From Amphiscolops sp. MND2022 (lineage: Eukaryota): a DNA stretch of 64,000 nt. Positions 3,351-58,700 of the stretch are shown here, piece by piece; position 1 is the first letter of the stretch; each line of letters starts with the position of its first letter. The translations under genes and the position numbers were made by a program. The notes below the pieces were generated by a model, which saw nothing but the letters and a program-made list of their open reading frames with translations, did no database searches and was not told the origin of the DNA. The stretch is taken from contig CAXLNC010001871.1 of assembly GCA_964187785.1 (NCBI GenBank), forward strand, positions 372,001 to 436,000, read 5' to 3'.

Positions 3351-4199
3351 TTCAGCTAGAATTTCGGTACGGACATTTCGATCGACTGTTTTTCCGGGTA
3401 ACTTTTTGGGCAGTCTTTCAGAACTGTCATTTTTGATGGTAGCTTTCTCGGACGCTAATTCGGCTAGAACTTCGGTACGGAAATTTTGAGCGACTTTTTG
3501 CGGATTCATTTTGGGCGGCTTTTCAGTACGGTCAATTTCAGTGATAGTTTCTCGAACGCTATTTCAGCTAGAAGTTTGGTACAGACATTGTGAACAACTG
3601 TTCTTGCGGATATATTTTTGGACAACATTCCAGTGCGGTCATTTTTATTGGTAGTTTTCTCGAACGTCTCTCAAGCTAGCATTTCGTTACAGACAATTTG
3701 AACCACAGTTTTTGAGGACAATGTTTTGGGGCAGACTTTCAGTACTGTCATTTTAATGGTAGTTTTCACGGACGCTATTTCAGCTGGCAGTTCGATAGGG
3801 ACATTTTGAATGACAGTTTTTGCGGAGACACTTTGGGCAGCATTTCAGTACGGTCATTTCCAGTGATATTTTTTCGAACGCTTTTTCACATAAAAGTTTG
3901 GTACGGACATTTTGAACATTTTTTTCCGCGGGTAACATTTTGGGCAGCATTTCACTGCGTCATATAGGTGATAGTTTTACGATTAGAAATTACGCTAGAA
4001 TTTCGGTACAAATATTTTGACCAACTTTTTTGCGGATACTTTTTGGTCAGCTTCTCAGTTAGGTAATTTTCGATGATAGTTTTTCGAACGCTATTTCAGC
4101 TAGAATTTTGGCACAGACACTTTGAACGACTGTTTTTGCGGTAGATTTTTGAGCAGCATTTCAGTACGGTCATTTCCAGTGATGTTTTTTGAACGCTTT

Positions 4200-5700
4200 T
4201 CCACAGAATTTTAGTACGGACATTTTGAACAACTGTTTTTGCGGGTAACTTTTAAGCAGCATTTTCAGTGATAGTTTTTGGGACAATTTTTTATCTAGTA
4301 ATTCGATACAGTCATTTTGAACCACTGTTTTTGCGGATAAAGTTTTGGGCAGCCTTTCAGAACTGTCATTTTTGAAGGTAGCATTCCCGGACGCTTTTTC
4401 AGCTAGCAGTTCGGTAAGGACATTTTGAACGACTGTTTTTGCGGATACATTTTGGGCAGCATTTCAGTACGGTCATTTTCAGTCATAGTTTTTCGAACGC
4501 TAATTCAGCTAGAAATTCGGTACGGACATTTGGAAAGACTGTTTCTGCAGATAAATTTTGGGCAGCATTTAAGTACGGTAATTTTCAATGAAAATTTTGT
4601 TGGGACGCTTTTTCAGGTAGCATTTCGTTACAGACAATTTGAACCACAGTTTTTGAGGACAATGTTTTGGGGCAGACCATCAAAACTGACATTTTAATGG
4701 TAGTTTTCACGGACGCTATTTCAGCTGGCAGTTCGATAGTCACATATTGAACGACAGTTTTTGCGGAGACACTTTGGGCAGCATTTCAGTACTGTCATTT
4801 CCAGTGATAGTTTTTCGAACGCTTTTTCACATAAAAGTTTGGTACGGACATTTTGAACAACAGTTTTTGCGGGTAACTTTTAAGCAGCATTTTCAGTGAT
4901 AGTTTTTCGGGACAATTTTTTATCTAGTACTTCGATACAGTCATTTTGAACCACTGTTTTTGCGGATAAAGTTTTGGGCAGCCTTTCAGAACTGTCATTT
5001 TTGAAGGTAGCATTCTCGGACGCTTTTTCAGCTAGCATTTCGGTAAGGACATTTTGAACGACTGTTTTTGCGGATACATTTTGGGCAGCATTTCAGTACG
5101 GTCATTTTCAGTCATAGTTTTTCGAACGCTAATTCAGCTAGAAATTCGGTACGGACATTTTGAAAGACTGTTTCTGCAGATAAATTTTGGGCAGCATTTA
5201 AGTACGGTAATTTTCAATGAAAATTTTGTTGGGACGCTTTTTCAGGTAGCATTTTGTTACAGACAATTTGAACCACAGTTTTTGAGGACAATGTTTTGGG
5301 GCAGACCATCAGTACTGTCATTTTAATGGTAGTTTTCACGGACGCTATTTCAGCTGGCAGTTCGATAGGGACATATTGAACGACAGTTTTTGCGGAGACA
5401 CTTTGGGCAGCATTTCAATACGGTCATTTCTAGTGATAGTTTTTCGAACGCTTTTTCACATAAAAGTTTGGTACGGACATTTTGAACAACTTTTTCTGCG
5501 GGTAACTTTTTGGGCAGCATTTCAGTGCGTCATATAGGTGATAGTTTTACGAACGCTAGAATTTCGGTACGGATATTTTGACCAACTTTTTTGCGGATAC
5601 TTTTTGGTCAGCTTCTCAGTTAGGTGATTTTCAGTGATAGTTTTTCGAACGCTATTTCAGCTAGAATTTTGGCACAGACAATTTGAACGACTGTTTTTGC
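4200..5700 (+). repeat. 6-monomer HOR, ~629 bp, including a deleted monomer
   Basis: Near-identical ORF-track translations at 4,425 and 5,054 (offset 629). One monomer lacks ~14 bp (TTTAAGCAGCATTTTCAGTGATAG). Boundaries are approximate. Confidence 0.8.
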
Positions 5701-6729
5701 GGTAGATTTTTGAGCAGCATTTCAGTACGGTCATTTCCAGTGATGTTTTTTGAACGCCCTTCCACAGAATTTTGGTACGTACATTTTGAACAACTGTTTT
5801 TGCGGGTAACTTTAAAGCATCATTTTCAGTGATAGTTTTTCGGGACAATTTTTTATCTAGTACTTCGATACAGTCATTCTGAACCACTGTTTTTGCGGAT
5901 TAAGTTTTGGGCAGCATTCCAGAACTGTCATTTTTGATGGTAGTTTTCTAGGACGCTTTTATAGCTAGCAGTCCGGTAAGGAAATTTTGAACGACTGTTT
6001 TTGCGGATACATTTTGGGCAGCATTCCAGTACGGTCCTTTCCAGTGATAGTTTTTCGAACGCTAGTTCAGCTAAAATTTCGGTATGGACATTTTGAATGA
6101 CTGTTTTCGCGGAAGATTTTTAGGCAGCATTTCAGTACGGTCATTTTAGGTGATAGTTTTTCGGACGCTTTTTCAGCTAGCATTTTGGGACGGACATTTT
6201 GAACAATTGGTTTTGCGGATAAATTGTTGGACAACATTTCAGTACGGTCATTTTTATTGGTAGTTTTCTCGAACGGCTCTCAAGCTAGCATTTCGTTACA
6301 GACAATTTGAACCACAGTTTTTGAGGACAATGTTTCGGGGCAGACTTTCAGTACTGTCATTTTAATGGTGGTTTTCACGGACGCTATTTCAGCTGGCAGT
6401 TCGATAGGGACATTTCGAACGACAGTTTTTGCGGAGAGACTTTGGGCAGCAGTTCAGTACGGGCATTTTCAGTCATGGTTTTTCGAACGCTTTCTCACAT
6501 AAAAGTTTGGTACGGACATTTTGAACAACTTTTTTTGCGGGTAACTTTTGGGCAGCATTTCAGTGCGTCATTTAGGTGATAGTTTTACGAACGCTAGAAT
6601 TTCGGTACGGATATTTTGACCGACTTTTTTGCGGATACTTTTTGGCCAGCTTCTCAGTTAGATGATTTTTAGTGATAGTTTTTCGAACGCTATTTCAGCT
6701 AGAATTTCGGCACAGACAATTTGAACGAC

Positions 6730-9190
6730 TGTTTGTGCGGTAGATTTTTGAGCAGCAATTCAGTACGGTCATTTCCAGTGATGTTTTTTGAACGCTTTTC
6801 CACAGAATTTTGGTACGGACATTTTGAACAACTGTTTTTGCGGGTAACTTTTAAGCAGCATTTTCAGTGATAGTTTTTTTGGGACAACTTTTTATCTAGT
6901 ACTTCGATACAGTCATTTTGAACCACTGTTTTTGCGGATAAAGTTTTCGGCAGCCTTTCAGAACTTTCATTTTTGAAGGTAACATTCCCGGACGCTTTTT
7001 CAGCTAGCAGTTCGGTAAGGACATTTTGAACAACTGTTTTTGCGGATACATTTTGGGCAGCATTTCAGTGCAGTCATTTTCAGTGATAGTTTTTCGAACG
7101 CTAATCCAGCTAGAAGTTCGGTACGGACATTTTGAAAGACTGTTTCTGCAGATAAATTTTGGGCAGCATTTAAGTACGGTAAATTTCAATGATAGTTTTG
7201 TTGGGACGCTTTTTCAGGTAGCATTTCGGTACAGACACTTTGAACGACTGTTTTTGCGGTAGATTTTTGAGCAGCATTTCAGTACGGTCTTTTCCAGTGA
7301 TGTTTTTCGAACGCTTTTCCACAGAATTTTGATACGCACATTTTGAACAACGGTTTTTGCTGGTAACTTTTAAGCAGCAATTTCAGTGATACTTTTTTGG
7401 GACAATTTTTTATCTAGTACTTCGATGCAGTCATTTTGAACATGTTTTTGCGGATAAAGTTTTGGGTAGCATTTCAGAACTGTCATGTTTGATGGTAGTT
7501 TTCTAGGACGCTTTTTCAGCTAGCAGTCCGGTAAGGAAATTTTGAAGGACTGTTTTTGCGGATACATTTTGGGCAGCATTTCAGTACGGTCTTTTCCAGT
7601 GATGTTTTTCGAACGCTTTTCCACGGAATTTTGATACGCACATTTTGAACAACGGTTTTTGCTGGTAACTTTTGAGCAGCAATTTCAGTGATCGTTTTTT
7701 GCGACAATTTTTTATCTAGTACTTCGATGCAGTCATTTTGAACATGTTTTTGCGGATAAAGTTTTGGGTAGCATTTCAGAACTGTCATTTTTGATGGTAG
7801 TTTTCTAGGACGCTTTTTCAGCTAGCAGTCCGGTAAGGAAATTTTGAAGGACTGTTTTTGCGGATACATTTTGGGCAGCATTCCAGTACGGTCCTTTTCA
7901 GTGAGAGTTTTTCGAACGCTAATTCAACTAAAATTTTGGTACGGACATTTTGAACAACTGTTTGTGCGGTAGATTTTTGAGCAGCAATTCAGTACGGTCA
8001 TTTCCAGTGATGTTTTTTGAACGCTTTTCCACAGAATTTTGGTACGGACATTTTGAACAACTGTTTTTGCGGGTAACTTTTAAGCAGCATTTTCAGTGAT
8101 AGTTTTTTTGGGACAACTTTTTATCTAGTACTTCGATACAGTCATTTTGAACCACTGTTTTTGCGGATAAAGTTTTCGGCAGCCTTTCAGAACTTTCATT
8201 TTTGAAGGTAACATTCCCGGACGCTTTTTCAGCTAGCAGTTCGGTAAGGACATTTTGAACAACTGTTTTTGCGGATACATTTTGGGCAGCATTTCAGTGC
8301 AGTCATTTTCAGTGATAGTTTTTCGAACGCTAATCCAGCTAGAAGTTCGGTACGGACATTTTGAAAGACTGTTTCTGCAGATAAATTTTGGGCAGCATTT
8401 AAGTACGGTAAATTTCAATGATAGTTTTGTTGGGACGCTTTTTCAGGTAGCATTTCGGTACAGACACTTTGAACGACTGTTTTTGCGGTAGATTTTTGAG
8501 CAGCATTTCAGTACGGTCTTTTCCAGTGATGTTTTTCGAACGCTTTTCCACAGAATTTTGATACGCACATTTTGAACAACGGTTTTTGCTGGTAACTTTT
8601 AAGCAGCAATTTCAGTGATACTTTTTTGGGACAATTTTTTATCTAGTACTTCGATGCAGTCATTTTGAACATGTTTTTGCGGATAAAGTTTTGGGTAGCA
8701 TTTCAGAACTGTCATGTTTGATGGTAGTTTTCTAGGACGCTTTTTCAGCTAGCAGTCCGGTAAGGAAATTTTGAAGGACTGTTTTTGCGGATACATTTTG
8801 GGCAGCATTTCAGTACGGTCTTTTCCAGTGATGTTTTTCGAACGCTTTTCCACGGAATTTTGATACGCACATTTTGAACAACGGTTTTTGCTGGTAACTT
8901 TTGAGCAGCAATTTCAGTGATCGTTTTTTGCGACAATTTTTTATCTAGTACTTCGATGCAGTCATTTTGAACATGTTTTTGCGGATAAAGTTTTGGGTAG
9001 CATTTCAGAACTGTCATTTTTGATGGTAGTTTTCTAGGACGCTTTTTCAGCTAGCAGTCCGGTAAGGAAATTTTGAAGGACTGTTTTTGCGGATACATTT
9101 TGGGCAGCATTCCAGTACGGTCCTTTTCAGTGATAGTTTTTCGAACGCTAATTCAACTAAAATTTTGGTACGGACATTTTGAACAACTGT
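6730..9190 (+). repeat. Near-perfect 1,229-bp tandem duplication containing an inner ~302-bp 3-mer duplication
   Basis: Identical translations at 7,004/8,233, 7,026/8,255 and 7,516/8,745 (all offset 1,229). The inner marker GATACGCACATTTTGAAC lies at ~7,331 and ~7,633. Confidence 0.9.
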
Positions 9191-11090: not shown

Positions 11091-14000
11091 TGTCATTTTC
11101 ACTGGTAGTTTTCACGGACGCTTTCTCAGCTAGCATTTTGGTACAGACATTTTGAACAACTGTTTTTGCGGGTAAAGTTTTGGGCAGCAATCAGTATAGT
11201 CATTTTTAATGGTAGTTTTTTCGAACGGTTTTTTTGGTAGCATTTCGATACGGGCATTTTAAAGGGCTGTTTTTGTGAATACATATTTGGGCAGCACTCC
11301 AGTACGGTCATTCTAACGGTAGTTTTCTCGGACGCGTTTTCAGCTAGCTTTTCGGTGCGAATATTTTGACCAACCGTTTTTGCGGATACATTTTTGGGCA
11401 GCATTTTAGTACGGTCATTTTTATTAATAGTTTTTTCGAATGGTTTTTCAGCTAGCATTCTGATACGGACATTTTGAACGACTGTTTTTGTAGATGAAAC
11501 TTTGGACAGCATTTCAGTACGGTCATTTTAATTGGTAGTTTTCTCGGCCGATTTTTCAGCTAGATTATTGGTACGGAGATTTTGAACAACCTTTTTTTGT
11601 GGATAAAATTTTGGGCAGCATTTCAGTACGGTCAGTTTATTGGTAGTTTTATCGGACACATTTTCTCCTAGAATTTCAGTACGGACATTTTGAACGAGTG
11701 TTTTTGCGGATAAATTTTTGGGCAGCATTTCAGTACTGTCATTTTAATGGTAGTTTTCGCGGACTCTTTCTCAGCTAGCATATCGGTACAGACATTTTGA
11801 ACAACTGTTTTTGCGGGTAAAGTTTTGGGCAGCAATTCAGTATGGTCGTTTTTAATGGTAGTTTTCGCGGACGCTTCTTCATGTATCATTTTGGTACGGA
11901 CATTTTGAACCACTGTTTTTGTGGATACATTTCTGGGCACCAATTCAGTACGGCCTATTTAAAGGTAGTCTTCTCGTTTTGCGGATACATTTTCAGTACT
12001 GTCATTTTTACTGGTAGGTTGTTCGGGATGCTTTTTCCCCTAGCATTTCAGTACGGACATTTTGAACGACTATTTTTGCGAATACATTTTTTGGGCAGCA
12101 TTTCAGTACTGTCATTTTTACTGGTAGTTTTCGCGGACGCTTTCTCACCCAGCATTTTGGTACAGACAATTTGATCAACTGTTTTTGCGGGTAAAGTTTT
12201 GGGCAGCAATTCAGTATGGTCATTTTTATTGGTAGTTTTTTCGAACGGTTTTTCAGCCAGCATTTTGATACGGGTAATTTGAACGGCTGTTTTTGTGGAT
12301 ACATTTTTGGGCAGCATTTCAGTACCGTCATTTTTGGTGTCAGTTTTTTCGGACGAATTTTTCCCTAGCATTTCAGTACGGACATTTTGAACGACTGTTT
12401 TTGCGAATACATTTTTTGGGCAGCATTTCAGTACGGTCATTTTAATTGCTAGTTTTCTCGGACAATGTTTCAGCTACAATACAAGTACGGACATTTTGAA
12501 CAACTGTTCTTGCGGGTAAAGTTTTGGGCAGCATTTCAGTGTGGTCATTTTAATGGTAGTTTTCTCGGACGCTTTTTTTCCTAGCAATTCAGTACGGACA
12601 TTTTGAACGACTGTTTTTGCGGATAAATTTTTGGGCAGCATTTCAGTACTGTCATTTTTACTGGTAGTTTTCGCGGACGCTTTCTCACCTAACATTTTGA
12701 TACGGACTTTTTGAACGACTGTTTTTGTGGATACATTTTTGGAAAGCATTTTAGTACCGTGATTTTTGGTGTCAGTTTTTTCGGACGGGTTTTTCAGCTA
12801 GAATTTCGTTACGGATTTTTTGAACAAGTGTTTTTGCGGGTAAAGCTCTGGGCAGCAATTCAGTATGGTCATTTTAATGGTAGTTTTCGCGATCTCTTCT
12901 TCAACTAGCATTTTGGTACGGACATTTTGGACGATTGTTTTTGCGGTATAATTTTGGGCACCAATTCAGTACAGTCAATTTAAAGGTAGTTTTCTCGGAC
13001 GCTTTTTCAGCTAGCTTTATGGTACCAATTTTCTGACCAACCGTTTTTGCGAATACATTTTTGGGCAGCATTTCAGTATGGTCATTTTTAATAGTAGTTT
13101 TCTCGGACGGTTTTTCCCCTAGCATTTCAGTACGGACATTTTGAACGACTGTTTTTGCGAATACATTTTTTGGACAGCATTTCAGTACTGTCATTTTTAT
13201 TGGTAGTTTTCGCGGACGCTTTTTCACCTAGCATTTTGGTACAGACAATTTGAACAACTGTTTTTGCGGCTGAAGTTTTGGGCAGCAATTCAGTATGGTC
13301 ATTTTTAATGGTAGTTTTTTCGAACGGTTTTCCAGCTAGCTTTTTGATACGGGCAATTTGAACGGCTGTTTTTGTGGATACATTTTTGGGCAGCATTTCA
13401 GTACCGTCAGTTTTGGTGTCAGTTTTTTCGGACGGTTTTTTCCCTAGCATTTCAGTACGGACATTTTGAATGACTGTTTTTGCGAATACATTTTTGGGCA
13501 GCATTTCAGTACGGTCATTTTAATTGGTAGTTTTCTCGGACAATTTTTCAGCTAGAATACAAGTACGGACATTTTGAACAACTGTTCTTGCGGGTAAAGT
13601 TTTGGGCAGCATTTCAGTACTGTCATTTTTACTGGTAGTTTTCGCGGACGCTTTCTCACCTAGCATTTCGATACGGACATTTTGAACGATTGTTTTTGTG
13701 GATACATTTTTGGACAGCATTTCAGTACCGTCGTTTCTGGTTTCAGTTTTTTTTGGACGGTTTTTTCAGCTAGAATTTCGTTACGGATGTTTTGAACAAG
13801 TGTTTTTGCGGGTAAAGCTCTGGGCAGCAATTCAGTATGGTCATTTTAATGGTAGTTTTCGCGATCTCTTCTTCAACTAGCATTTTGGTACGGCCATTTT
13901 GGACGACTGTTTTTGCGGTTTATTTTTGGGCACCAATTCAGTACAGTCAATTTAAAGGTAGTTTTCTCGGACGCTTTTTCAGCAAGCTTTTTGGTACGGA

Positions 14001-14549
14001 TTTTTTTGACCGACCGTTTTTGCGGATATAAATTTGGGCAGCATTTCAGTATGGTCAATTTAAAGGTGGTTTTCTCTGACGCTTTTTCGGCTAGCTTTAT
14101 GGTACCAATTTTCTGACCGTTTTTGTGAATACAATTTTGGGCAGCTTTTCAGTATGGTCATTTTTAATGGTAGTTTTCTCGGACGGTTTTTCCCCTAGCA
14201 TTTCAGTACGGACATTTTGAACGACTGTTTTCGCGAATACATTTTTGGGCAGCATTTCAGTACCGTCATTTCAATGGTAGTTTTCTCAAACGCTTTTTCG
14301 GCTAGCTTTTCGGTACGGATACTTTGACTGACCTTTTTTGCGGATACATTTTTGGGCAGCATTTCAGTACGGTCATTCCTAATGGTAGTTTTCTCGAACA
14401 GTTTTTCAGCTAGCATTTCGATACGGACATTTTGAACGACTGTTTTTGAGGTAGATTTTTGGGCAGCATTTCAGTACGGTCATTTTAATTGGTAGTTTTC
14501 TCGGACAATTTTTCAGCTAGAATACAAGTACGGACATTTTGAACAACTG

Positions 14550-17500
14550 TTTTCGCGGATAAACTTTTGGGCAGCATTTCAGTGCGGTCATTTTAAATTG
14601 TAGTTTAATCGGACGCTTTTCCCCTAGCATTTCAGTTGGACATTGTGAACAACTGTTCTTGCGGGTAAAGTTTTGGGCAGCAATCAGTATAGTCATTTTT
14701 AATGGTAGTTTTTTCGAACGGTTTTTTGGTAGCATTTCGATACGGGCATTTTAATTGGCTGTTTTTGTGAATACATATTTGGGCAGCACTCCAGTACGGT
14801 CGTTCTAACGGTAGTTTTCTCGGACGCGTTTTCAGCTAGCTTTTCGGTGCGAATGTTTTGACCAACCGTTTTTGCGGATACATTTTTGAGCAGCATTTTA
14901 GTACGGTCATTTTTATTAATAGTTTTATCGAATGGTTTTTCAGCTAGCATTCTGATACGGACATTTTGAACGACTGTTTTTGTAGATGAAATTTTGGACA
15001 GCATTTCAGTACGGTCAATTTAATTGGTAGTTTTCTCGGACACTTTTTCTCCTAGAACTTCAGTACGGACATTTTGAACGACTGTTTTTGCGGATAAATT
15101 TTTGGGCAGCATTTCAGTACTGTCATTTTAATGGTAGTTTTCGCGGACTCTTTCTCAGCTAGCATATCGGTACAGACATTTTGAACAACTGTTTTGCGGG
15201 TAAAGTTTTGGGCAGCAATTCAGTATGGTCGTTTTTAATGGTAGTTTTCGCGGACGCTTCTTCATCTATCATTTTGGTACGGACATTTTGAACCACTGTT
15301 TTTGTGGATACATTTCTGGGCACCAATTCAGTACGGCCTATTTAAAGGTAGTCTTCTCGTTTTGCGGATACATTTTCAGTACTGTCATTTTTACTGGTAG
15401 GTTGTTCGGGATGCTTTTTCCCCTAGCATTTCAGTACGGACATTTTGAACGACTATTTTTGCGAATACATTTTTTGGGCAGCATTTCAGTACTGTCATTT
15501 TTACTGGTAGTCTTCGCGGACGCTTTCTCACCTAGCATTTTGGTACAGACAATTTGATCAACTGTTTTCGCGGATAAACTTTTGGGCAGCATTTTAGTGC
15601 GGTCATTTTAAATTGTAATTTAATCGGACGCTTTTCCCCTAGCATTTCAGTTGGACATTGTGAACAACTGTTCTTGCGGGTAAAGTTTTGGGCAGCATTC
15701 AGTATAGTCATTTTAATGGTAGTTTTTTCGAACGGTTTTTTGGTAGCATTTCGATACGGGCATTTTAATTGGCTGTTTTTGTGAATACATTTTTGGGCAG
15801 CACTCCAGTACGGTCATTCTAACGGTAGTTTTCTCGGACGCGTTTTCAGCTAGCTTTTCGGTGCGAATATTTTGACCAACCGTTTTTGCGGATACATTTT
15901 TGAGCAGCATTTTAGTACGGTCATTTTTATTAATAGTTTTATCGAATGGTTTTTCAGCTAGCATTCTGATACGGACATTTTGAACGACTGTTTTTGTAGA
16001 TGAAATTTTTGACAGCATTTCAGTACGGTCAATTTAATTGGTAGTTTTCTCGGACACTTTTTCTCCTAGAATTTCAGTACGGACATTTTGAACGACTGTT
16101 TTTGCGGATAAATTTTTGGGCAGCATTTCAGTACTGTCATTTTAATGGTAGTTTTCGCGGACTCTTTCTCAGCTAGCATATCGGTACAGACATTTTGAAC
16201 AACTGTTTTTGCGGGTAAAGTTTTGGGCAGCATTTCAGTACGGTCATTCCTAATGGTAGTTTTCTCGAACAGTTTTTCAGCTAGCATTTCGATACGGACA
16301 TTTTGAACGACTGTTTTTGAGGTAGATTTTTGGGCAGCATTTCAGTACGGTCATTTTAATTGGTAGTTTTCTCGGACAATTTTTCAGCTAGAATACAAGT
16401 ACGGACATTTTGAACAACTGTTTTCGCGGATAAACTTTTGGGCAGCATTTCAGTGCGGTCATTTTAAATTGTAGTTTAATCGGACGCTTTTCCCCTAGCA
16501 TTTCAGTTGGACATTGTGAACAACTGTTCTTGCGGGTAAAGTTTTGGGCAGCAATCAGTATAGTCATTTTTAATGGTAGTTTTTTCGAACGGTTTTTTGG
16601 TAGCATTTCGATACGGGCATTTTAATTGGCTGTTTTTGTGAATACATATTTGGGCAGCACTCCAGTACGGTCGTTCTAACGGTAGTTTTCTCGGACGCGT
16701 TTTCAGCTAGCTTTTCGGTGCGAATGTTTTGACCAACCGTTTTTGCGGATACATTTTTGAGCAGCATTTTAGTACGGTCATTTTTATTAATAGTTTTATC
16801 GAATGGTTTTTCAGCTAGCATTCTGATACGGACATTTTGAACGACTGTTTTTGTAGATGAAATTTTGGACAGCATTTCAGTACGGTCAATTTAATTGGTA
16901 GTTTTCTCGGACACTTTTTCTCCTAGAACTTCAGTACGGACATTTTGAACGACTGTTTTTGCGGATAAATTTTTGGGCAGCATTTCAGTACTGTCATTTT
17001 AATGGTAGTTTTCGCGGACTCTTTCTCAGCTAGCATATCGGTACAGACATTTTGAACAACTGTTTTTGCGGGTAAAGTTTTGGGCAGCAATTCAGTATGG
17101 TCGTTTTTAATGGTAGTTTTCGCGGACGCTTCTTCATCTATCATTTTGGTACGGACATTTTGAACCACTGTTTTTGTGGATACATTTCTGGGCACCAATT
17201 CAGTACGGCCTATTTAAAGGTAGTCTTCTCGTTTTGCGGATACATTTTCAGTACTGTCATTTTTACTGGTAGGTTGTTCGGGATGCTTTTTCCCCTAGCA
17301 TTTCAGTACGGACATTTTGAACGACTATTTTTGCGAATACATTTTTTGGGCAGCATTTCAGTACTGTCATTTTTACTGGTAGTCTTCGCGGACGCTTTCT
17401 CACCTAGCATTTTGGTACAGACAATTTGATCAACTGTTTTCGCGGATAAACTTTTGGGCAGCATTTTAGTGCGGTCATTTTAAATTGTAATTTAATCGGA

Positions 17501-47770: not shown

Positions 47771-50733
47771 CATTTCAGTACGGTCATTTTTAATGGTAGT
47801 TTTCGCGGACGCTTTTTCAGCTAGCATTTCGGTACGGAAATTTTGAGCAACGGTTTTTGCGGGTAAAGTTTTGGGCAGCAATTCAGTATGGTCATTTTTA
47901 ATGGTAGCTTTTGTGCACGCTTCTTCAGCTAGCATTTTGGTCAGGACATTTTACACGACTGTTTTTGCGTGTATATTTGTGGGCAGCATTTCAGTACTGT
48001 CAGTTTGGTGAGAGTTGTTCGGAACGCTTTTCCCCTAGCCTTTCAGTACGGATACTTTGAACGACTGTTTTTGCGAATACATTGTTTGGGGATCATTCCA
48101 TTACCGTAAATTTTAATGGTAGTTTTCTCGAACAATTTTTTTCAGCTAGCTTTTCGGTACGGACATTTTGAACCACTATTTTTGAGGATACAGTTTTGGG
48201 CAGCAATTCAGTACGGTCAATTGAATGGTAGTTTTCTTGCTAGCTTTTGATGCGGATTTTTTGAACGATCGTTTTCGCGGATGCAATATCGGGCAGCATT
48301 TTAGTACGGTCATTTTTAATGGTAGTTTTCTCGGACGCTTTATCTCCTAGCATTTCAGTACGGACATTTTGAACGACTGTTTTTACAAATACACTTTTTT
48401 GGGCAGCATTTCAGTACCGTCAATTTTGGTGTTAGTGTTTTGGGAGGCTTTTTAAGCTAAAAGTTCGGTACAAAATTTTGAACAACTGTTTTTGCGGCTA
48501 CATTTTTGCAGTTATTCAAAAAACACTTGATCAAAAATTGGATCAAATAAGTTTTGGAGCTTTGTAATATCAAGTTTCAATACCTTGTACGTACTTTTAA
48601 ATTTTGGTCTAGGAGCAGTTGTTTGCAAGTTTTGCAAGTTTGTAGTATTGACAAAGACTAATCCGTTCACTAATGACGATATGTTTTGTTAACAGAAAAC
48701 GTGAAGAAACTATAAGAATTTGAAGGTTCTCTAAAAAGTAATTCTATGCCCTATTTATTACATTGCATTCGAGTTTTTTCCTGTAAATTTTCATGTTCGA
48801 GAAGGCTTTTTCCAAAGTCCTTCAATAAAAATTGTTACAATGGATAGGTCTGTTGCAAAATCGTCTGATCGATTAAACACTCACGGTTTTTCAAACGTGA
48901 ACTAAAAGCGAGTAGAAATGCTAAAAAATAAATTGAAGAAACGAGCAATACCGGTGCTTACAACACTGTCATTAAACAAATTGAATGAGAGAGCAACACC
49001 CTGTGCTGGAAAAGTTGCTCTGAACACAAAAAAGAAATAGCATTGCCATGTGCGGATCAGGAGTTTAAAGAATCAGATGTTTTGAGTTTAATCCAGTTGG
49101 GGGAAGGAGGTCAGGGGTGACTCGTTGTTTGAATTGAACCATAAATGCGCGAGAATTTTATAAACTTTCTAAACGTGTTATCAGTTTGATTAGTAGTTTT
49201 CCAGAAAATAAGACGGAAAATATCTAAAACTGGAGTTGATTCGGTGATCTCTAAAACATTTTTTTCGCAACCTGGAAAGCAAAATTACCAATATTGGTCA
49301 AATGAAAAAATGCACGAACTAGTTTTGCAGAAAGCTGGAATATATAATGTCCTAAAACGAACACTTAAAACACCTCAAATAATGTATTTTCGAAGAGGCT
49401 CTCAGCTAGGGGATGACATCATGTCGCCCATAACAAGACCCAAGACGAGAACGCGGCCTCTAAAGGGTCACAAAATTTAAGGGTTACAAATTACAAAAGT
49501 AAATCTAACTAACAATAAATATAAAATCTGCACCTTTACAAAATTTTATATGTACAGAATTCTATTTACAGGTATCTACAGTAAGGGCTTGTAACCTTTT
49601 CTGTACTTGCTGAAGTGCCGAAAAAATGTTTTATAAAATCTCTACAAAAAAGGTAAACTATGTTCGATATGAAAACATTGTAAGTCTGTCATTCTAAAAT
49701 ATTGGTATCAGATCATGCAGTCTTCTTTCACAGTTTGTGGCTGGTTCTTGGCCAACATCGTTGACCACACCTTCATTCGATGAGGCACATGGTAGTTTTC
49801 AAAAAGACCCTTTGTTCACTGCCAAGACGAGATTCCTATACAATCGTTTTTTGGTTGACCATCACGGCTGCGGGAAAGTTCCCATATATATCACACGTTT
49901 TAATAGATCTTGATACTCTTGATCACCGGGTTACTCAGAATCTTTCGCTCGACTATGTCCTGTAAAAAAACCAAACAAATACCTTCAAACTAATGAATTT
50001 GTTTGTGTCTGGGGGGGATACTGATTTTCTACTTGTGATACGAATCTCGGCTGAGTCTCATTGTCCCAATTAGGTGATAAACACCCATATATCACCTTAA
50101 AAACCAAGTCAACCCCATTGGAAGCTATAATGGCTGTGCGGTTTGCAAATCACGGGGTTAGTAATTTGCCTTCAGTTGTTTCAAAAAACGTAAATTGCGT
50201 CCATTACTTTGATGAATGCGTTGTGTACTTAAACCTTCAGAATCCTCAGTGAAACGTTCATAAAAATGTATCAGAATCTCTTGAAGAAATTGTCTATTGT
50301 GAAGAATAGTTACCTGATTGCGTTGCATACTTAGACCATCAGAATCATCGGAGAGGGATTGATGAAATTTCATCAGATTTTTCGAAGTAATTGTTAATTG
50401 CAATAACTTATTAGATGGTTGCTTTGGTCACTTAAACACACCCATCATAAACTACCAGAAACATCGGAGATAAAGTCATGAAATATTTTTGCCTTCCCGA
50501 AGCTAGTTACTCTCTCAAAACTCAAACCTTCAGGAAAAAGGTTCATTTATCATCCTAACCTTAAGTTTCTTTCATCAACTCCAACTTGAATTTTCCCTAT
50601 TAACTTAAACTTCGTTCATCATTCATCTTTAACTTGTATCGTCATCTTTAATCTCACTTTCGTTCATCATCTTCAACCTAATTTTTATTTTTCATCTCTA
50701 ATTCTTCTCCAACTAACTTGGAATAAAAAAACA

Positions 50734-51460
50734 ATGTCTTTTCATTACAGCCTACAACTATTCTGTAACGTATCTTATGAAACTCCAAGAAACATATTTG
50801 AGTATCAATCTCTGAAGAACGTAGAAGACTCATTTTACTGCGAAAAGTACCGTTTCTTCATGAATCATTCAATAGGTAAAATCATGAACGAGATACAAAT
50901 TCCGAATCATATCTAGAGGCGATCTCACATGCAATCAATGAGTCAACTGACAGATATTTTCCAATTAAAAAGTTAAAAAAACGTGAACAAAAAAATCATG
51001 GATAGCGAATCGTATCAAGTGACACATTGCAAACAGAGATAAACTTTATCAGTTATGGATCAAAACTAAAACAAAGGAAGATTACGAAATATACAAGAAG
51101 AAACGAAATGAAGTCAACATGAAAATCAAAAGAGTAAAGCGAAATGAAGTTCCAACTTTAACTTGACCAAAATAGTTTGAAAGAACTTTTCAGAGAAGTA
51201 AAGAAAGTGAAATTCGCTAGCACTCAAGTGGCAAAATGTGGTGACTTATTTGTTGAGGCTTTCAATATTTACTTCATACCTGCTGTTGATACCTCCAGCA
51301 TTATCTTAACTCACCATTGGAACAGTCAGCAAGCCGAACAGCCACAATCATTATTCCTCCGTCCAGTTAGTGATGCTGAAATTTCGCAACACACTTCCAC
51401 ATTGTAAAACAAAAAGTCTACTGGTATGGATTTCATTGAGGTGAAAGTTTTGAAAAAAAA
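50734..51460 (+). mobile_element. Degenerate fragment of an APE-type non-LTR retrotransposon ORF2 (endonuclease-RT linker), CR1/L2-like
   Basis: Frameshifted reading: YLEAISHAINESTDRYFPIKKLK...WIANRIK*HIANRDKLYQLWIKTKTKEDYEIYKKKRNEVNMKIKRVK...FLRPVSDAEISQHTSTL*NKKSTGMDFIEVKVLK. This matches the typical W-I...RDKLY...YK..RN.VN and F.PV...EI...L.NKKS.G.D linker pattern. The RT is absent. Confidence 0.8.
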
Positions 51461-51749
51461 AATGCTTGATTGATACCAATTTCGTCTCCCACAAGTTTTT
51501 TGTGGCTTTGGATTTCCACGTAGTTTAGCAGCAGGAGGGTGCCGTTAAGCTGTATAAAATTACATACATCAGTTACAGCATGTGTATGCATTATGCATCG
51601 GGTCGCAATCAGGGTAGCCAGGGAAAAATTCCCAGGTTCCCATTGGTCAAACTAAATTGATTGTAAATTGAATTTCGTTGAGGAAAAAATCAAAACTTCC
51701 AAGATTGCAGAAAGTCTAACGTGCATTTTTCGTTGTGAAATTCAGAAAT

Positions 51750-52081
51750 AATTAGAGACTTCGATTCAAATGCAAGGTATTACAATTAGGACTCGATGGA
51801 TATCTGTAAAACCTCATTCGACAAAAACTGTCGCCTTCACAAGTATTTAGTTTTCAAAGACAATAACGGTGACCAGGAACAAATTTGGCCCTGCAAGTTG
51901 TTTCAATCGCTTGTCGGAACCCAATGTTGTATTCGAATGTGGAGGTGCAACGAAGCTGATCGTTTGAGTGTATCCTTTAAGGGAAACCTACGCCGGCGAC
52001 GAATTCCTTGTGGAATACTCTCTAAGTTATTTTGGTCCGAACCACGAGGATTGCCATTGTGCTTCCTGCAATTTGAAGAGA
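51750..52081 (+). pseudogene. Suv4-20/Set9 (KMT5B/C)-like SET domain with post-SET CxCxxC, disrupted
   Basis: Reconstruction: ...HKYLVFKDNNGDQEQIW[LG]PASCFNRLSEPNVVFECGGATKLIV*VYPLRETYAGDEFLVEYSLSYFGPNHEDCHCASCNLKR. W is at 51,886; the frame from 51,890 to 52,081 has one stop, at 51,965. It aligns by eye with the KMT5B signature [20 protein letters not shown]...[32 protein letters not shown] (recalled from memory). The N-terminal half is more eroded. Confidence 0.85.
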
Positions 52082-52199
52082 TCTGTTCCCCATGAAGTGG
52101 CTGGGCAACCGACTGAATTAGTTGACCCCTGAAGTGGATGCTAACGAAGTCGTCTCCCCTATGCAGAACCCATCATTCTTCAATTTCCAGTCCAACATA

Positions 52200-52290
52200 G
52201 TGTTGCACGAGTTCCAGTCCGTTGCGCCTTTGCATAACCCAGTGTTTCACGAGTTTCTTTCCGTTGCGCATTTGCCAGTGTTCCAAGAGG
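52200..52290 (+). repeat. Short in-frame tandem repeat (~36-42 bp, 3 copies) in the linker after the SET domain
   Basis: VLHEFQSVAPLHNP / VFHEFLSVAHLP / VFQEVQSAAD within ORF 52,122-52,505. Confidence 0.7.
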
Positions 52291-52480
52291 TCCAGTCCGC
52301 CGCTGACTGTAACACAGTCACTCTGGAACACCCGCTGACAACTCTATCTGAGATAGGTGAGACGGCGTCTTTGAATTCAACGCGACCAGAGTGTTCTAGT
52401 TGCTCAGACAGAAAATCCTGCTCCACCAGTTGCACCTGCAGCACAAGTAGAAGAAAGCGAAATACTCGGAAAATTGTGTT

Positions 52481-52680
52481 TGTTTTATCTGCCATCATTT
52501 CGTGAAGAGGATTGATCCGCGTCTTCTCATTGTCCATGTTCACTTCCTCACAGACCTTGATAGGCAACTGCTCAAAAGTTCTTACCGTTTCCGGTAATGC
52601 AGTGAAAGAGCGTTGATTCGTGACATATGCAACCGTCGATTCGTATCAAAGTGTACTCATGAAAAACACAGGCATGTAAC
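52481..52680 (+). pseudogene. Two degenerate C2H2-like zinc fingers
   Basis: Single frame starting at 52,481: CFICHHFVKRIDPRLLIVHVH...R*CSERALIRDICNRRFVSKCTHEKHRHV. Finger 1 needs R to be H and finger 2 needs R (CGT) to be C (TGT); each is a single-base change. Confidence 0.62.
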
Positions 52681-52898
52681 GTAAGTGACAACTTTATTCG
52701 TATTTATTTTCAATAGCAAACAACAAATTTAGGACAAAATTTTAGGAGAAACTAACCAATTTTAGGTTTTTAGCATTACTCCATGAAAACCTTTCAGAAA
52801 AGTTCTCACTCATAGTAAACGAGATAAAAAATTATCACAAACTTTCATGCAAACACCACAAGGAAATTACGACCAGTTTATTATTTTTTCGCTTCCAG
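52681..52898 (+). other. Candidate GT-AG intron (218 bp, phase 2)
   Basis: Donor AC|GTAAGT at 52,681, an AT-rich interior, and acceptor TTATTATTTTTTCGCTTCCAG| ending at 52,898. Splicing joins the zinc-finger frame to the frame that carries the recombinase N-terminal motifs. Confidence 0.7.
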
Positions 52899-53700
52899 GC
52901 TGCTTCCAGCCAGTCTGACTAAGAAAATGAAGGGAAGCCGAGTAGTTCGGAAAAAAATGTCATCAAAGCCGAAGCAAGCGTACGTGATTTTCCAGCGGCA
53001 AGCGCAGACATTGGCCCTTGGAGGAAGTCACTGAAAATGATATTCCGTGGTTGAAAAGGTTGTCAGCAATATTTTGCGGTGAAACCGATAACTTCAGAGA
53101 ACCCAGAGCTTTCTAGACGTAGCACACAAAATCCAATTACGTCAAAAATTAGTCCCCCAGACAATGATAACCTGTTTGGCGTGCCTCAAGACTTTCATCA
53201 ATTTCCTTGTGTTGCGGGGTGGTCTTATTTGCTCGGGAATCATAGCCGCAGTGCGTAATGCTAAAGCGTTTTATAGTAGCGGCTGCGGCAATGTAGGTTA
53301 AACTACAGAACCCAACCAAACTTACTTCTAACTTGGAAAGTGCCAGTTGAAATTAGCAAAAAGGGATTACTTAGACAAATCGACACAAAACTGGTCAACA
53401 TCACGTTGGCAGCGCTCTCCGTGTTCCAGACGATCATTTCAAACTACTAGATCATTTCATGCAGAATTACGAGCAGGAGTTAGGACATGTCCCCGATCTG
53501 ATTTTTGTAACGAAAAAAGGCTCGCAAGACAGAATTTGTCGCGTGAGATCACCGCAACATTCGTAGCGAAGTTCGGTGATAACGCAAACAATGTCCAATT
53601 TATGGCTAATTCGCTACAAACGTACAAACAGGTGAGGGTACAGGAGTTAACTCAGAAACAGATCATCAGCCCTGCTTGGAAATTCCTAAACTGAATTGTT
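52899..53700 (+). pseudogene. Tyrosine recombinase (Crypton-like / phage-integrase fold), disrupted
   Basis: Core-binding-like region: FQRQAQTLALGGSH*K*YSVVEKVVSNIL...FLDVAHKIQLRQKLVPQTMITCLACLKTFINFL. Catalytic-like region across frameshifts: RLNYRTQPNLLLTWKVPVEISKKGLL (R at 53,307) / NRHKTGQHHVGSALRVPDDHFKLLDHFMQNYEQELGHVPDLIFVTKKGSQ (HKTG 53,384-53,395) / QNLSREITATFVAKFG...FMANSLQ (Q at 53,617 where the second Arg is expected). The catalytic Tyr could not be identified. Confidence 0.72.
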
Positions 53701-54722
53701 GGTAGTTCTTCGATTAAAAAACCAATAACAATGGAAAAGTATCGGAACTTCTTGAAAAAAACTGAATATGTTTTGTTCAATCTGGAAGACGAGGCAGATT
53801 CCGCGACCAAGGATGACAATGTAAGACGAGTATGACAGGGTTTGTGCTAAGACAAGGATTCGAGCAGCAACGTCTCACAATGTGGGTGTTTCTTGAGAAG
53901 CACCGGTTGCAGCAGCTGTAGAAGGATCGTGTGTCTTCTGTAGAAAAATCGTCACTTTTGAGGCGCGGGTGTTAATTCCTCGAAGAATATTTTGGACGTT
54001 GGTAATTAACTGGTAGAACAATGTTTCGTACCTAACTTTCAAACATCTGATTATTGTTCAATATTGACATTCAATTTTACAATCGATGGTGTGTGCAACA
54101 AAAATATTATAACTTCTCGTTTGTATGTATTTCTGAAATTTCCAATTGTGTGCACGTAAAATGGTTCTCAATAGTTTTGTCCATCAATTTTTGGAACTTT
54201 CGTAGTTTATTCATTTACTTGAATATTTGTGCTGAAATGTCTAATGGAATTTCGTCTTTGTACATTTCGTGCAGCCTTTCATTCATATACTTGATTATAT
54301 GTGATGAAATTCATTTTTGAATTTCTTGTTCATTGAAACAACAACAACTGCAGGGTAATTCCACCTTTTTAGTTATAAAAACGTACATTTTTGTGCGAAG
54401 TGGCAGGAAAGATCCATGGAGAAAATGTTTTTAGAAATATTTTTTTTTCATGCAAAACGGCAGGACTGTTGCAAAGAAATCAGCATACCAATTGAAATTG
54501 TGTTTGTTTTCCCAATGAGAAATAGAATAGAGTCAGAATTAGATAGTTGAAAAAATCGCTGGTTCAGTGTGGAATAGGTAGATGGAGAGATGGTTATCTC
54601 GACCCGTCTTTTTTCAAATACCTATCCTGGTACCTATTAATAAGGAGCGCACGATGGGAAGCTCCCTATAGAAAGTAAAATAACTTGGCGTGCACTTTGT
54701 AAAATGCGGATTAATTGTCATT

Positions 54723-54915
54723 GATATATAGATAGATAAAACGATAGATATATAGATAGAAAGATAGATAGATATATAGATAGATAGTTACATAGATAGA
54801 TAGACAGGAAGATAGATAGACAGAAAGATAGATAGATATATAGATAGATAGATAGATAGACAGATAGATAGATAGATAGATTTATATACAGATAGATAGA
54901 AAGATATATAGATAG
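54723..54915 (+). repeat. Imperfect (GATA)n microsatellite
   Basis: About 190 bp of GATA with GACA, TATA and GAAA interruptions. Confidence 0.97.
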
Positions 54916-55711
54916 AAATAATCAGTTATAAACACACGATTCATGTTCCTTACTTGCAAGTCCAAATGTAAAACTGACTATTCAACTGAATTGCCTGTTG
55001 TGTTTAAAAACTATCACCGTTGACTGATATTTGTAGTACTTTTTATTGCAGTACGTAAATTCCAAAACTGGTCACAGGATTTTTGTTTTAGTTCTGCTTC
55101 TGCTTCTTGCGGTGTCTCTTTATGCCCCAATTAAAGGAAACACTGACAGTTTTGTCAACACTGACAAGGGAGGTGTCGGAGAAACAGGTTAGCTGTTTAA
55201 AAAAAGATAACAAATTGATACTAAACAACCGTTGCCCAAACCAACGATTACCACACAGGAGATGAAACTAGATTGAAAGTAATTACAAAAGTATATTTAT
55301 ATTTATAAACAAACTATAAATAAAAACTATAAACAAACTCCAAATTTCGCTCAAACTTTCTAATTCTCGCAAATCACAATACTACTCACCCTTTTTATTA
55401 CCATTGAGGCCTCTGTTTTTAATCTCCGTGCAATTTTATTCCAACTAAAACTACATAATAAACACAAATCATTTCATATAACTCTCGCATTCCAATCACT
55501 CAAGAACTAAAACTTTCAACTTATGATCAAGAACTCTGTGCCATAACTTTCGCCCTTTCTCAATATGATTTCATTATCATTGGCTCTAAATTCGCAATTA
55601 CTAGTTTCACTGATCACAACACAGAAAATTTCCACCACATATTGAATATAACAATATAACAATATAACAATTCTTGGGCTAACACGTGGTATCCCAAACC
55701 AACTTACAATT

Positions 55712-58700
55712 ATGCAGATGGTTTCAATCGATGATTCTGAATTTTGGACCTAACTGTTTATTGGTTCAATCAAGCAATTGACCCCTACTACGTTCATCTT
55801 GTTGCTTTCGATTTTAGGTGCTACCTCGCCTCGCAACAAAGATGATGAAAAACTATGCTGTGCCCCTATCGCTAACTGCTCCTATTTTATGTCAATCAAA
55901 AATCATTCGAAACTTCAAATAAAACAAAAAATTATGGGTTGCAACCAGGGCGACTTTTGAAAGTATTAAAAAGGTCCCCAATAATTTTTTTCCTTATTTC
56001 TATTACTTGCAGAAGATGTCGAACTTAACCCCGGCCCCACTTACGTGTATAAGAAAACTACTGCAGTGTTCTCCCGTAGCAGCAAAAAAATGAAGTTTTT
56101 CCATATGAATTGTCAAAGCATTGTCCTAAAGAAAAAGCAAATCGAAAACCTTGTCAGGGATCTTGGCAGCAACACTGTTAACGGTGTCTCTGAAACATGG
56201 TTAAAAGAAGAGTATAGTCAGAGTTTTAAGGAATTGAAAAAAGATCTTTTCAAAACATTTCGATCGGATCGAGAAACATTGCTGAAAGAAAGAGGCGGTG
56301 GAGTAATGCTTATTGATCCAAAATCACTTAATCCCAAAATAAGAAAGGACCTCAATCATCTGAACAAAAACTTATATGAAAGCCTTTGGATAGAATACAA
56401 CCTTAGCAATAACGCCCATATTTAAAAAAGCAACTCATTAACATCAGCTACAACCCAACAAAAATTTCAAAAGATTTTTTCTCGAAGAATTATCAACCAG
56501 CATTGATTTTGCCGTTACCGAAAACAAGCCAAATACATTGGTGGGGGTTTCTAATATCGACTATCTCAATTGGAAAGATAAGCAATGCTTAGATTCTGTC
56601 ATTGTTCCCTATGGACTCAGCGTTATCAATAAAAACCCACCAACCAGGATTCAAAGAAATTCCAGCTCCTTGACCGATTACATTATAACTGATCTTCCCC
56701 ATGCTGAAAACCTTGAGTCCGTTGTGCCTGATACAACATTGAGGACACTGAATAATACAGACATTGATCACCTAGGTACCTCAATCATTACAACGCTAGA
56801 AATGAAAACAAAATCAAAAGTTATAACAAAAGAAATCTTCGATAAATCAAATTATTCGAAAGAGGTATTCCGCAACGTCATCAATAATGCTAACTGGAGT
56901 AGTTTCTATAATCAAAACTGAACTGAGGGGAGGTACACAAAATTTTGCGACATCATTGAGAAAGCGCTTGATAAATGTACCTAAAGAAAGACAGTTTCCG
57001 TCAAAAATGATAACAATATTCTTACTATGCATAATAAATGGATCAAAACACAGACCCGGAACAATTATCGAAAAATCAACCTCAACTCAAACCCAAATGA
57101 GGTTGCCTATAAAACACTTAAACATGATTTCATCGATAATTTAAGCGCTAATGAGATGGAACATAGAATTAAATGCTTCAATGGCTTGACATCAGAAAAA
57201 GAGAAATGGCACTTTTTAAACGAAGCCAGAAACGCCAATAGAACTGCAACGACAATATTTATGTTTCAACCCATAAGTCTATTTGAATTTAAAAAACAGA
57301 TCAAGAACTTGAATATCAATAAACCTATAGGACCAACGAAAAGTCCTGCGTGGGCTTTAAAAGATGCCATGAATGTAAGTGCCGAGCCACTCACCTTTCT
57401 GATTACCGCTTTTCTGGAGGAAGGAATATTCCCAAACATTTTAACCAAGCTTATGTAATACCAATATTCAAAAAAGGAGATTGCGAAGAACCTAACAACT
57501 ATCGACCGAGCTCTATTACTCCTACACTGTCTAAAATTTTTGAAAAAGTCCTAAGAGACTAAATCACTCAATTTTTGAAAGAAACGAACTACTCACTTCA
57601 TCTCAATTCAGTTTCCGTGAAAATTTTTCTTCTGTTGATGCGTTGTTGTATGCTACTGAGAACATCCGGAAAAAGTAAACGACAACGAAAACGTTCCTGC
57701 TGCATTTTTGGATATTTCGAAAGCGTTTGATTCTATTTCTCATTCTATTTTGCTGGACAAACTGCGAGAACTTAATTTTGGTAATCATGCAGTCTAATTG
57801 ATAGAAATATATCTGAAAAATCGAAGTCAAAAAGTGATGCTCACCACTTGTAAATCGGATTGGATACAATTATTTAGAGGTGTTCCACAAGGCACTGTAT
57901 TGGGTCCTCTTCTCTTCAATATTTGCGTCAATAGTATGAGAAAATCGGTTTCTAACTATTGTCAACTTGTACAATATGCTGATGATACAATGATATATTC
58001 AGCCCATTCAGATTAAAACCAATCAATTCAAAATCTCGAAGAAAATTTCAGAAAACTGGTTCACTTTTTTAAATGCCATAGACTGACTATCAACGCAAAT
58101 AAGACTGAAATCATAGTTTTCTGTAAACCATCCATAAACAATCAAAAGAAAAATCAAGAATTGGTGGTGAAAAAGAAGTAATCAAAAATTGGGACTGTGT
58201 AAAATTTCTTGGAGTCTTTCTTGATCAGAACCTAAATTTTCAAAAAAAAGTGAAGAATCTTTTGAAAAAAATGGCATGCGGAATCAACACATTATACGTA
58301 ATACGTGAATCATTTCCCGAAAAAACTCCGATTCTGATATTGAATGCATATCAGTCATGTTCATTTTTCTGCTATCTTGCTTAATGGAGTTTCAGAAAAT
58401 CTGTTGACCACTTTAGAAAAACAACTGAGCTGGGCGGTTAAAGTGTGTTTCAATAGGAGAAAATGTGATCACTCAACGGATCCGAAACTTTTACATGGTA
58501 TTTTACCTATACAATATTTCTTGGAATTAAAATCGTTTTTTTTGGAAATTCTGTCACAATATTGTTCCTTCTTTAACGAATGATAATAGACCAACTACTG
58601 CGGTTTTCAGAGAACATAAACGAACGGATCAAATCTGACTCAATATCAAAAGAAACAGTATCTTCATTGAAATTAGCTTTTTCAACAAAGTGGTCCCAAT

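Follow-up and report, generated by a model that had tools for sequence, protein, structure and literature searches.

Did a mobile element once carry, in a single protein, both a site-specific recombinase and a histone methyltransferase? The question is raised by a decayed locus in a 64,000-nucleotide stretch of the genome of Amphiscolops sp. MND2022 (contig CAXLNC010001871.1, positions 372,001 to 436,000; the whole stretch is called the window below, and its positions are counted from its first letter). From the letters alone, an earlier note had described there a SET domain, a linker, two finger motifs, an intron and tyrosine-recombinase (YR) motifs, on one strand and in that order, within a reading frame broken by frameshifts. 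When the window is compared by tblastn with the intact 1,060-residue protein of a related copy (L015), collinear matches with E-values of 1e-9 to 2e-48 are obtained, far above chance, and all of the described parts are present on the plus strand: the SET halves, the post-SET, the linker, two finger-like motifs, the intron, and core-binding followed by catalytic YR-like parts. The best reading, to which we give a probability of roughly 0.6, is that of a Crypton-like DNA element with an added chromatin-enzyme domain; the mobility of that element, the role of the recombinase as its mobilizing enzyme, and any activity on chromatin are what we infer. The window copy itself spans approximately 50317-54916 (+) by homology to other copies, and it is a dead, internally deleted copy of what is probably a multi-copy eukaryotic element with one four-exon gene.

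The case for a fusion protein comes from the relatives of the window copy. A phmmer search of 1.84 billion representative proteins with window positions 53375-53563 returned two true relatives, P0002 and P0004 (ENA assembly), and besides these only two low-complexity artefacts. On the contig of P0002 (L001), a neighboring upstream gene with a weak SET match adjoins the YR-like gene. The SET-finger exon of L001, used as a query, retrieved 15 protein clusters, and the YR-like exon of another copy (L003) retrieved 13, or at least 25 with a profile. All clusters come from ENA assemblies and one Logan run, none is named, and a profile search of 5.8 billion proteins found family members only and no named protein; a degenerate-pattern scan of JGI metagenomes found no relatives. 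The clusters are spread over many contigs, most copies are broken (and in differing ways), and identity among members ranges from 37 to 99% in the YR part. Four subfamilies can be distinguished: A (the window copy, L001-L005, and L015), B (L013 and L016), C (L007), and D (L006). Because an identical 390-residue subfamily-B recombinase open reading frame (ORF) occurs in both L013 (ENA ERZ1742291) and L014 (Logan SRR4030075), the family is not confined to one assembly.

In all four subfamilies the order of domains is the same: SET, linker, two fingers, YR-like domain, an acidic/proline-rich tail, and a C-terminal domain; subfamily B, too, joins SET and YR. Different subfamilies have lost different introns, so that each domain junction lies inside a single ORF somewhere in the family: both SET halves with the fingers in subfamily D (L006 8674-9894), the fingers with the YR-like domain in subfamily C (P0026; L007 9647-11479), and the YR-like domain with the C-terminal domain again in D (L006 9965-11503). 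Subfamilies C and D lack intron 2 and read straight through. All exons are open in L003 and L015. Those of L015 (7551-7911, 8583-9615, 9892-11108, and 11565-12136) are separated by three GT..AG introns with matching phases (donors GTTAGT, GTAAGT, and GTAAGT; acceptors TTTAG, TTCCAG, and CAATAG), and the spliced model has a 3,183-nucleotide coding sequence that specifies 1,060 residues with no stop. Given four open exons, the SET-finger-YR fusion exists as a natural, apparently intact gene; a single gene, and a single protein made from it, unites the SET domain, the fingers, and the YR-like domain. The supposition of the earlier note that the active ancestor made a single protein is thereby upheld, and other copies that link SET and YR were found in every subfamily, with L015 as the intact member. 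As a separate observation, the subfamily-C copy, from which the C-terminal SET half is missing, lies on a 47-kb contig (ctg178054_164x_c) that the assembler flagged as circular.

Judged by its sequence matches, the SET domain is of the KMT5/Suv4-20 type, in agreement with the assignment first made from the window. Family members match Pfam PF00856 at 37.2 and 24.1 bits (37.2 against a cut-off of 22.4), and the ten best PDB matches of the subfamily-D domain are all KMT5B or KMT5C (E 2.4e-16 to 2.5e-14), the next family following at E 0.0027; even the SET piece of the window matches KMT5B/C weakly (E 0.07) at the right place in the protein. The C-terminal half and post-SET are about 45% identical to KMT5B/KMT5C (Suv4-20h1/h2) over about 80 residues, and the NH(S/D)C, YxG..FG, and CxC..C post-SET motifs are common to both. 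The differences lie in the N-terminal helical region of the family, which cannot be aligned, and in context, the family's SET standing at the N terminus of a recombinase fusion that a repeated element encodes. Intact copies have the NHSC/NHDC, Y..YFG, and post-SET motifs; in the window copy NHSC has been destroyed by mutation to NRLS.

Between the SET and YR-like domains, two finger motifs recognized by eye, CxxC-9-H-4-H and then CxxC-9-H-3-C, are kept in all four subfamilies and have no match to a Pfam finger profile at E-values up to 1. The C-terminal domain, of about 60 residues, has a pattern (..RP.W.E....LF........DV..KL......L.......Y.K.K.A) that is kept across subfamilies; it has no Pfam match, a profile search of the PDB gave nothing meaningful, and it may be a small DNA-binding helical domain.

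The third domain is very likely a tyrosine recombinase from a lineage outside current profiles. In an AlphaFold2 model of residues 60-372 of the exon-3 ORF (predicted local distance difference test [pLDDT] 71, predicted template-modeling score [pTM] 0.60), Foldseek recognizes the YR fold at ranks 1-9 of the PDB matches (Cre, YopR, SroF), with MrpR, TelA, XerD, and XerA lower down, and a poorer first structure model gave the same outcome. The predicted structure thus agrees with the two-domain arrangement of the superfamily, a helical SAM-like core-binding domain and then a catalytic domain made of a three-strand sheet and a bundle of helices. Against the viral library BFVD the top matches were a nudivirus integrase (E 7.9e-3, probability 0.97), a giant-virus integrase (0.95), a hytrosavirus tyrosine recombinase (0.99), and VLF-1 (0.98), and about 20 of the first 31 matches are named integrase, recombinase, or VLF-1; since that library holds viral proteins only, these matches are silent on origin. 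Six intact cores from the four subfamilies share without exception the NCR Arg, HKTG, N-S-x-R, the T(G/A)H His, and the last Tyr, at spacings of 27/73/3/30/9 (R204, K231, R307, H337, and Y346 in the L003 ORF). Catalytic spacings in lambda Int and XerD are close to these, and the distances from Lys to NxxR (73) and from His to Tyr (9) are those of lambda Int. Pfam Phage_int_SAM_1 has weak matches in 4 of 12 members (best E 0.032). With Cre and viral integrases matched by the predicted family model, and with a near-complete catalytic set, the recombinase fold first suspected in the window has stood up, and its motifs fall into place: NYR corresponds to the family's NCR (Arg I), HKTG to the invariant HKTG (the hairpin Lys), IFVTKKG to LIFGTKKG, and ANSLQ to NANSMRKY at the HxxR position, with R changed to Q.

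Selection has acted on these same domains. Codon changes were counted by domain between L015 and six other subfamily-A copies. The ratio of nonsynonymous to synonymous change (dN/dS) is mostly 0.13-0.47 for the SET domain, the fingers, and both YR parts (0.21, 0.45, 0.34, 0.29, and 0.22 for the SET, finger, and YR values of L015 against L001), which indicates that selection preserved both SET and recombinase as the family diversified. Ratios are mostly about 0.6-1.9 in the linker, in the tail, and in the N-terminal part of exon 4, with some values of 0.16-0.30 among the closest copies; the disordered linker alone gives 0.25-2.95, mostly at least 0.6, in five of six comparisons and is near neutral.

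The copy in the window, whose features are collected in the table, has been heavily damaged, with at least eight in-frame stops, about ten frameshifts, and three deletions, so the frameshifts that the earlier note held to have broken the gene are real. Its nucleotide identity to L001 is only 68-86%, and we consider it old for that reason. In the exon 1 remnant, which aligns well only over 51460-51652, the frame is stopped at 51526 and shifted near 51575; in the C-terminal SET half it is stopped at 51807 and 51965 and shifted near 51855; the finger region has stops at 52448 and 52595; the core-binding part has two frameshifts (about 53010 and 53100); and the catalytic part combines a stop (53372) with three frameshifts (near 53290, 53365, and 53515). 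Deletions have removed amino acids (aa) 596-645, which are 50 residues of the catalytic domain, and aa 777-871 with the His and Tyr motifs (located by blastn relative to L001 10125-10365 and 10623-11096). Also deleted is everything in exon 4 past aa 917, the C-terminal domain with it, together with some 2 kb of the 3′ region, L005 13252-15478 having no counterpart in the window by blastn. A full R..K..HxxR..Y set, as first proposed, is thus not what this copy holds: the Tyr motif is deleted, Arg II has become Q, and the first His is Asn in the family as a whole.

The boundaries first drawn also need revision. A fusion placed at 51750-53700 is too short by the homology-based extent and starts too late, since the SET domain begins in a separate upstream exon at 51460 and is interrupted by a second short intron; SET and post-SET together (L015 aa 38-229) map to 51460-52114. 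The intron proposed between fingers and recombinase is genuine, with splice signals and phase as in L015. Farther upstream, the 5′ non-coding region keeps traces of a tandem repeat (176 bp) that stands ahead of exon 1 in other copies, and the foreign sequence that separates it from exon 1 is probably a later insertion, outside the element proper. The intron 1 remnant is short and lacks the 153-bp repeat array present in intron 1 of other copies. Profile searches of the window alone, which the earlier note had put forward as a check, were unhelpful: Pfam run on ten stop-free pieces gave nothing useful, with a match to neither SET nor recombinase. Translation of 51400-54000 in three frames does show the described pieces, but each by itself is too short, and too badly damaged, to be recognized by a profile.

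Table. Positions of the decayed copy and neighboring remains in the window, and of the C-terminal domain in other copies; aa numbers refer to L015
Feature	Position (strand)	Basis or remark
5′ non-coding region	50317-50704 (+), 5′ boundary approximate	blastn to L005 8682-9283, L003 8137-8745, L001 6840-7167
Foreign sequence	50705-51459 (+)	no homology to L001/L003/L005, which hold only ~320 bp there
Exon 1 remnant, N-terminal part of SET (aa 38 to ~120)	51460-51718 (+)	tblastn with L003 and L015 exon 1; blastn to L001 7888-8073
Intron 1 remnant	~51719-51788	from L015 gene model; blastn gap 51654-51768
C-terminal half of SET and post-SET Cys motif (aa 121-229)	51789-52129 (+)	tblastn, 64.6% over 82 aa, E 4e-28
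Low-complexity linker, FHE(F/L)QSV-type repeats	52122-52455 (+)	tblastn
Two zinc-finger-like motifs, end of exon 2	52436-52680 (+), homology to 52666	tblastn, 63.6% over 77 aa
Intron 2	52681-52888	donor AC/GTAAGT at 52680/52681, acceptor CAG/G at 52888/52889
YR-like core-binding, SAM-like helical part (aa 466-595)	52889-53292 (+)	tblastn (aa 467-595 at 52903-53292)
YR-like catalytic part (aa 646-776)	53283-53676 (+)	tblastn; Arg I (NYR), Lys (HKTG), NxxR position (ANSLQ)
Intron 3 remnant, one 153-bp repeat unit	53676-53772 (+)	blastn to L001 10944-11044 and 11096 onward
Exon 4 start (aa 872-917)	53774-53923 (+), tblastn 53786-53923	stops 53822, 53894
3′ non-coding region, common to other copies	54165-54722 (+)	blastn to L005 15478-15700, L002 12116-12217; alignments with L004, L005, L002
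(GATA)n tract at shared 3′ end	54723-54916 (+)	Tandem Repeats Finder (TRF); window, L004, and L002 align through the tract, then diverge
Non-LTR (long terminal repeat) retrotransposon remains	56045-58583 (+)	endonuclease-like N-terminal ORF; Pfam RVT_1 at 57798-58013, E 3e-13
Non-LTR ORF2 fragment, inside 5′ part of the SET-recombinase copy	~51000-51470 (+)	endonuclease-to-reverse-transcriptase linker pattern in translation
C-terminal domain in other copies	L015 11894-12133; L007 12673-12912; P0031 425-500

The surroundings of the window copy are repetitive throughout. Positions 1-48508 form a single continuous satellite array (period 54/108/216 bp by TRF, about 71-76% matches) whose strands differ strongly in composition (AT skew about -0.3, GC skew about +0.12) and which is unrelated to the satellites beside other copies of the element; its derivation from the element's 3′ 54-bp minisatellite was considered and rejected, the similarity being no better than that of shuffles. 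The last 15 kb of the window are transposon debris in eukaryotic repeat-rich DNA. A second SET-recombinase copy was looked for in the window and none was found, and Rfam had no match on the window or on four loci.

How did such a gene come to be repeated? No reverse transcriptase (RT) and no other ORF of at least 75 residues with coding character was found in the roughly 7.7-kb block shared by copies (L005 7968-15746) or in L015 6077-14159; the RT fragments near the window copy are of non-LTR type and are unlinked to the element in other copies. That much of the earlier proposal, the lack of a linked RT, has held. Flanks are unrelated between copies. Three subfamily-A copies (the window copy, L004, and L002) cease to be alike after a (GATA)n tract (L004 15956-16067; L002 12375-12490), and in the subfamily-C copy such a tract (L007 13699-13822) lies about 800 bp past the last exon; the tract may be a terminal feature, a target of the element, or merely a common microsatellite. 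The sequence just before the tract was examined as a conserved cis-acting end and discarded, being unalignable between subfamilies A and C. L015 6050-14200 contains no inverted repeats and, apart from arrays of a 153-bp unit in introns 1 and 3, no internal direct repeats. These arrays (about 3 units; 7945-8400 and 11096-11600) stand in direct orientation about 3.2 kb apart and bracket the SET-C, finger, and recombinase exons, and L001 has the repeat in intron 2 as well; the repeat may be a minisatellite or some small mobile sequence, or it may serve as a substrate for recombination.

A number of observations weigh against a Crypton-like mobile element. Neither target-site duplications nor short terminal direct repeats, empty sites, or circular junctions came to light, and no ends could be made out: the flanks of the window copy match no empty site among all fetched loci, so that the comparison of filled and empty sites by which the earlier note had hoped to set the termini yielded none; tandem repeats of 102 and 176 bp obscure the 5′ end; and similarity in L015 and L005 does not extend as far as the (GATA)n tract. 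Several copies lie in satellite arrays or local tandem duplications, and amplification without transposition could yield the same picture. As to the recombinase, the Foldseek E-values are weak (best 7.9e-3) and the TM scores are 0.27-0.41, with a model built from a shallow alignment, and all members have Asn in place of the first catalytic His, that of the HxxR box (N-S-[MIV]-R). The catalytic domain has no match at E-values up to 10 in Pfam Phage_integrase (PF00589), NCBIfam, PHROGs, or PDB sequence and profile searches, and DUF3504 (PF12012) matches 0 of 12 members, so that the Crypton half of the earlier proposal found no counterpart in these profiles. Comparisons by hhalign with alignments of FimB, FimE, XerC, XerD, lambda Int, and Cre gave probabilities below 1%; the profiles are thin (effective number of sequences about 2), which makes this negative result uninformative rather than contrary. 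The low dN/dS (below 1) between copies would be equally expected of a family of host genes under selection. On a different point, a full-text literature search, with Repbase and Dfam outside its range, found no description of a SET-bearing Crypton or YR element.

Part of this list would suit the most serious rival, that we are dealing with a multi-copy host gene family, possibly a domesticated recombinase, amplified in heterochromatin by satellite-associated duplication, with the window copy as a pseudogene. We regard this as unlikely, though it deserves to be taken seriously. Four subfamily-A copies (L003, L004, L005, and L015) are embedded in arrays of, or lie beside, one 85-bp-based satellite (periods 85/170/255/320; for example L004 818-7949 and L015 14451-15436), and their flanks are less alike (72-86% identity) than the elements themselves (94-97%). 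Against the rival, flanks are unrelated between copies. Local duplication certainly occurs: L016 carries three subfamily-B copies within 17 kb (993-7830 and 12496-17173), the first two of which repeat the 5′ 3.4 kb (exon 1 and the SET-finger exon) in tandem at 99% identity. Set against this are four deeply diverged subfamilies within one assembly, many broken, truncated, or internally deleted copies on different contigs, and the presence of the family in two other sequencing data sets. The conserved exon/intron structure with its canonical splice sites speaks for a host gene, as does dN/dS well below 1 even for close copies (dN 0 and dS 0.037 for the catalytic YR part of L015 against L003), and so does the lack of definable termini or target duplications; but the full catalytic set is kept here, whereas domesticated Crypton domains (DUF3504) have lost most of theirs (Kojima and Jurka 2011; PMC3212892).

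An improbable alternative is that the family spread by reverse transcription of an unspliced transcript with borrowed non-LTR machinery, in which case the recombinase would not be the mobilizing enzyme. The (GATA)n tract at which three subfamily-A copies end before they diverge, and its counterpart downstream of exon 4 in a subfamily-C copy, could be taken for a 3′ signature of this process, but 3′ ends vary (L015 and L005 stop before the tract), the sequence preceding the tract is not conserved between subfamilies, and GATA microsatellites may just be common in the genome. L004 and L001 are truncated on the 5′ side and non-LTR elements are abundant around the window copy; even so, introns are kept in all copies. 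That the recombinase part is a piece of an endogenized large DNA virus (a nudivirus or hytrosavirus integrase, or VLF-1) lying beside an unrelated SET pseudogene is hardly credible, for although the best structural matches in the viral library are of those three kinds, the SET-finger-YR order in all four subfamilies and within single ORFs contradicts chance adjacency, spliceosomal introns are present, and an IMG/VR scan with the family's most conserved peptides gave no relative.

If the family is indeed a Crypton-like DNA element, its recombinase would excise and integrate it as double-stranded DNA, with no reverse transcription, as has been proposed for Cryptons. The KMT5-type SET domain and finger module would bind or methylate nucleosomes at histone H4 lysine 20 (H4K20), and might serve either as a tether to heterochromatin, comparable with the chromodomain of some integrases, or as a writer through which new insertions are packaged. 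Every copy examined lies in DNA rich in satellites or other repeats, a location compatible with a tie to heterochromatin and no proof of it. More tentatively still, we speculate that this is a recently active eukaryotic DNA transposon from a YR lineage not catalogued before, whose single protein includes a working H4K20 methyltransferase, and that the element either picks heterochromatic or satellite targets by means of its SET and finger module or marks the nucleosomes around its own insertion; such a specific scenario is possible rather than probable. A transposon-borne histone methyltransferase fused to the element's own recombinase would, if real, represent a new control of landing site or packaging and a tractable link between site-specific recombination and H4K20 methylation, and L015, being apparently intact, is a natural sequence suited to direct expression and assay. 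The family also widens the known diversity of eukaryotic tyrosine recombinases, and current sequence profiles miss it. Should it prove to be a host gene family instead, a domesticated recombinase with its catalytic residues still in place, joined to a chromatin enzyme in satellite DNA, would be unusual too.

Among known systems, the viral proteins closest in predicted structure, the nudivirus, hytrosavirus, and baculovirus integrases and VLF-1 (probability 0.97-0.99), are without a relationship to the YR domain at the sequence level, and they are encoded by viral genes that lack introns, SET, and fingers. DIRS, Ngaro, and PAT elements resemble the family in employing a YR in place of a DDE integrase, and DIRS has a methyltransferase-like domain; they differ in having Gag, RT/RNase H, and inverted terminal repeats with internal complementary regions (ITR/ICR) or split direct repeats, none of which occurs in the shared block. 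Cryptons are nearer. Like the family, they are repeated elements of eukaryotes in which a YR is the sole enzyme of DNA breakage and joining, with no RT and no evident terminal repeats, and they may carry accessory domains in the same protein as the YR. The accessory domains described are GCR1_C, DDE, C48 peptidase, and helix-turn-helix, and introns occur; for animal Cryptons neither terminal repeats nor a C-terminal domain is reported, and SET is not mentioned (Kojima and Jurka 2011; PMC3212892). CryptonA and CryptonI differ from the family, which has no detectable similarity to the DUF3504 or Phage_integrase profiles, has Asn for the first His, and at 1,060 residues is much longer, with its N-terminal KMT5-type SET, two finger motifs, and conserved C-terminal domain. 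By its presumed way of working we place the family with Crypton-type YR DNA elements. Sequence similarity was looked for as a test of kinship and was not detected; Crypton membership is on that account unproven.

Joining a transposition enzyme to a chromatin module does have precedents. In chromoviruses a Ty3/gypsy integrase carries a chromodomain, and in SETMAR a SET domain is attached to a mariner transposase; a tyrosine recombinase is absent from both. SETMAR, a host gene of primates present in a single copy, arose by capture of a transposon, and its SET domain was not borne by one. The chromovirus chromodomain reads heterochromatin marks in the choice of targets and does no writing. Transposons are known to read chromatin and to be silenced by it, and the family described here, if the more tentative scenario above is correct, would add a transposon that goes beyond reading and writes it.

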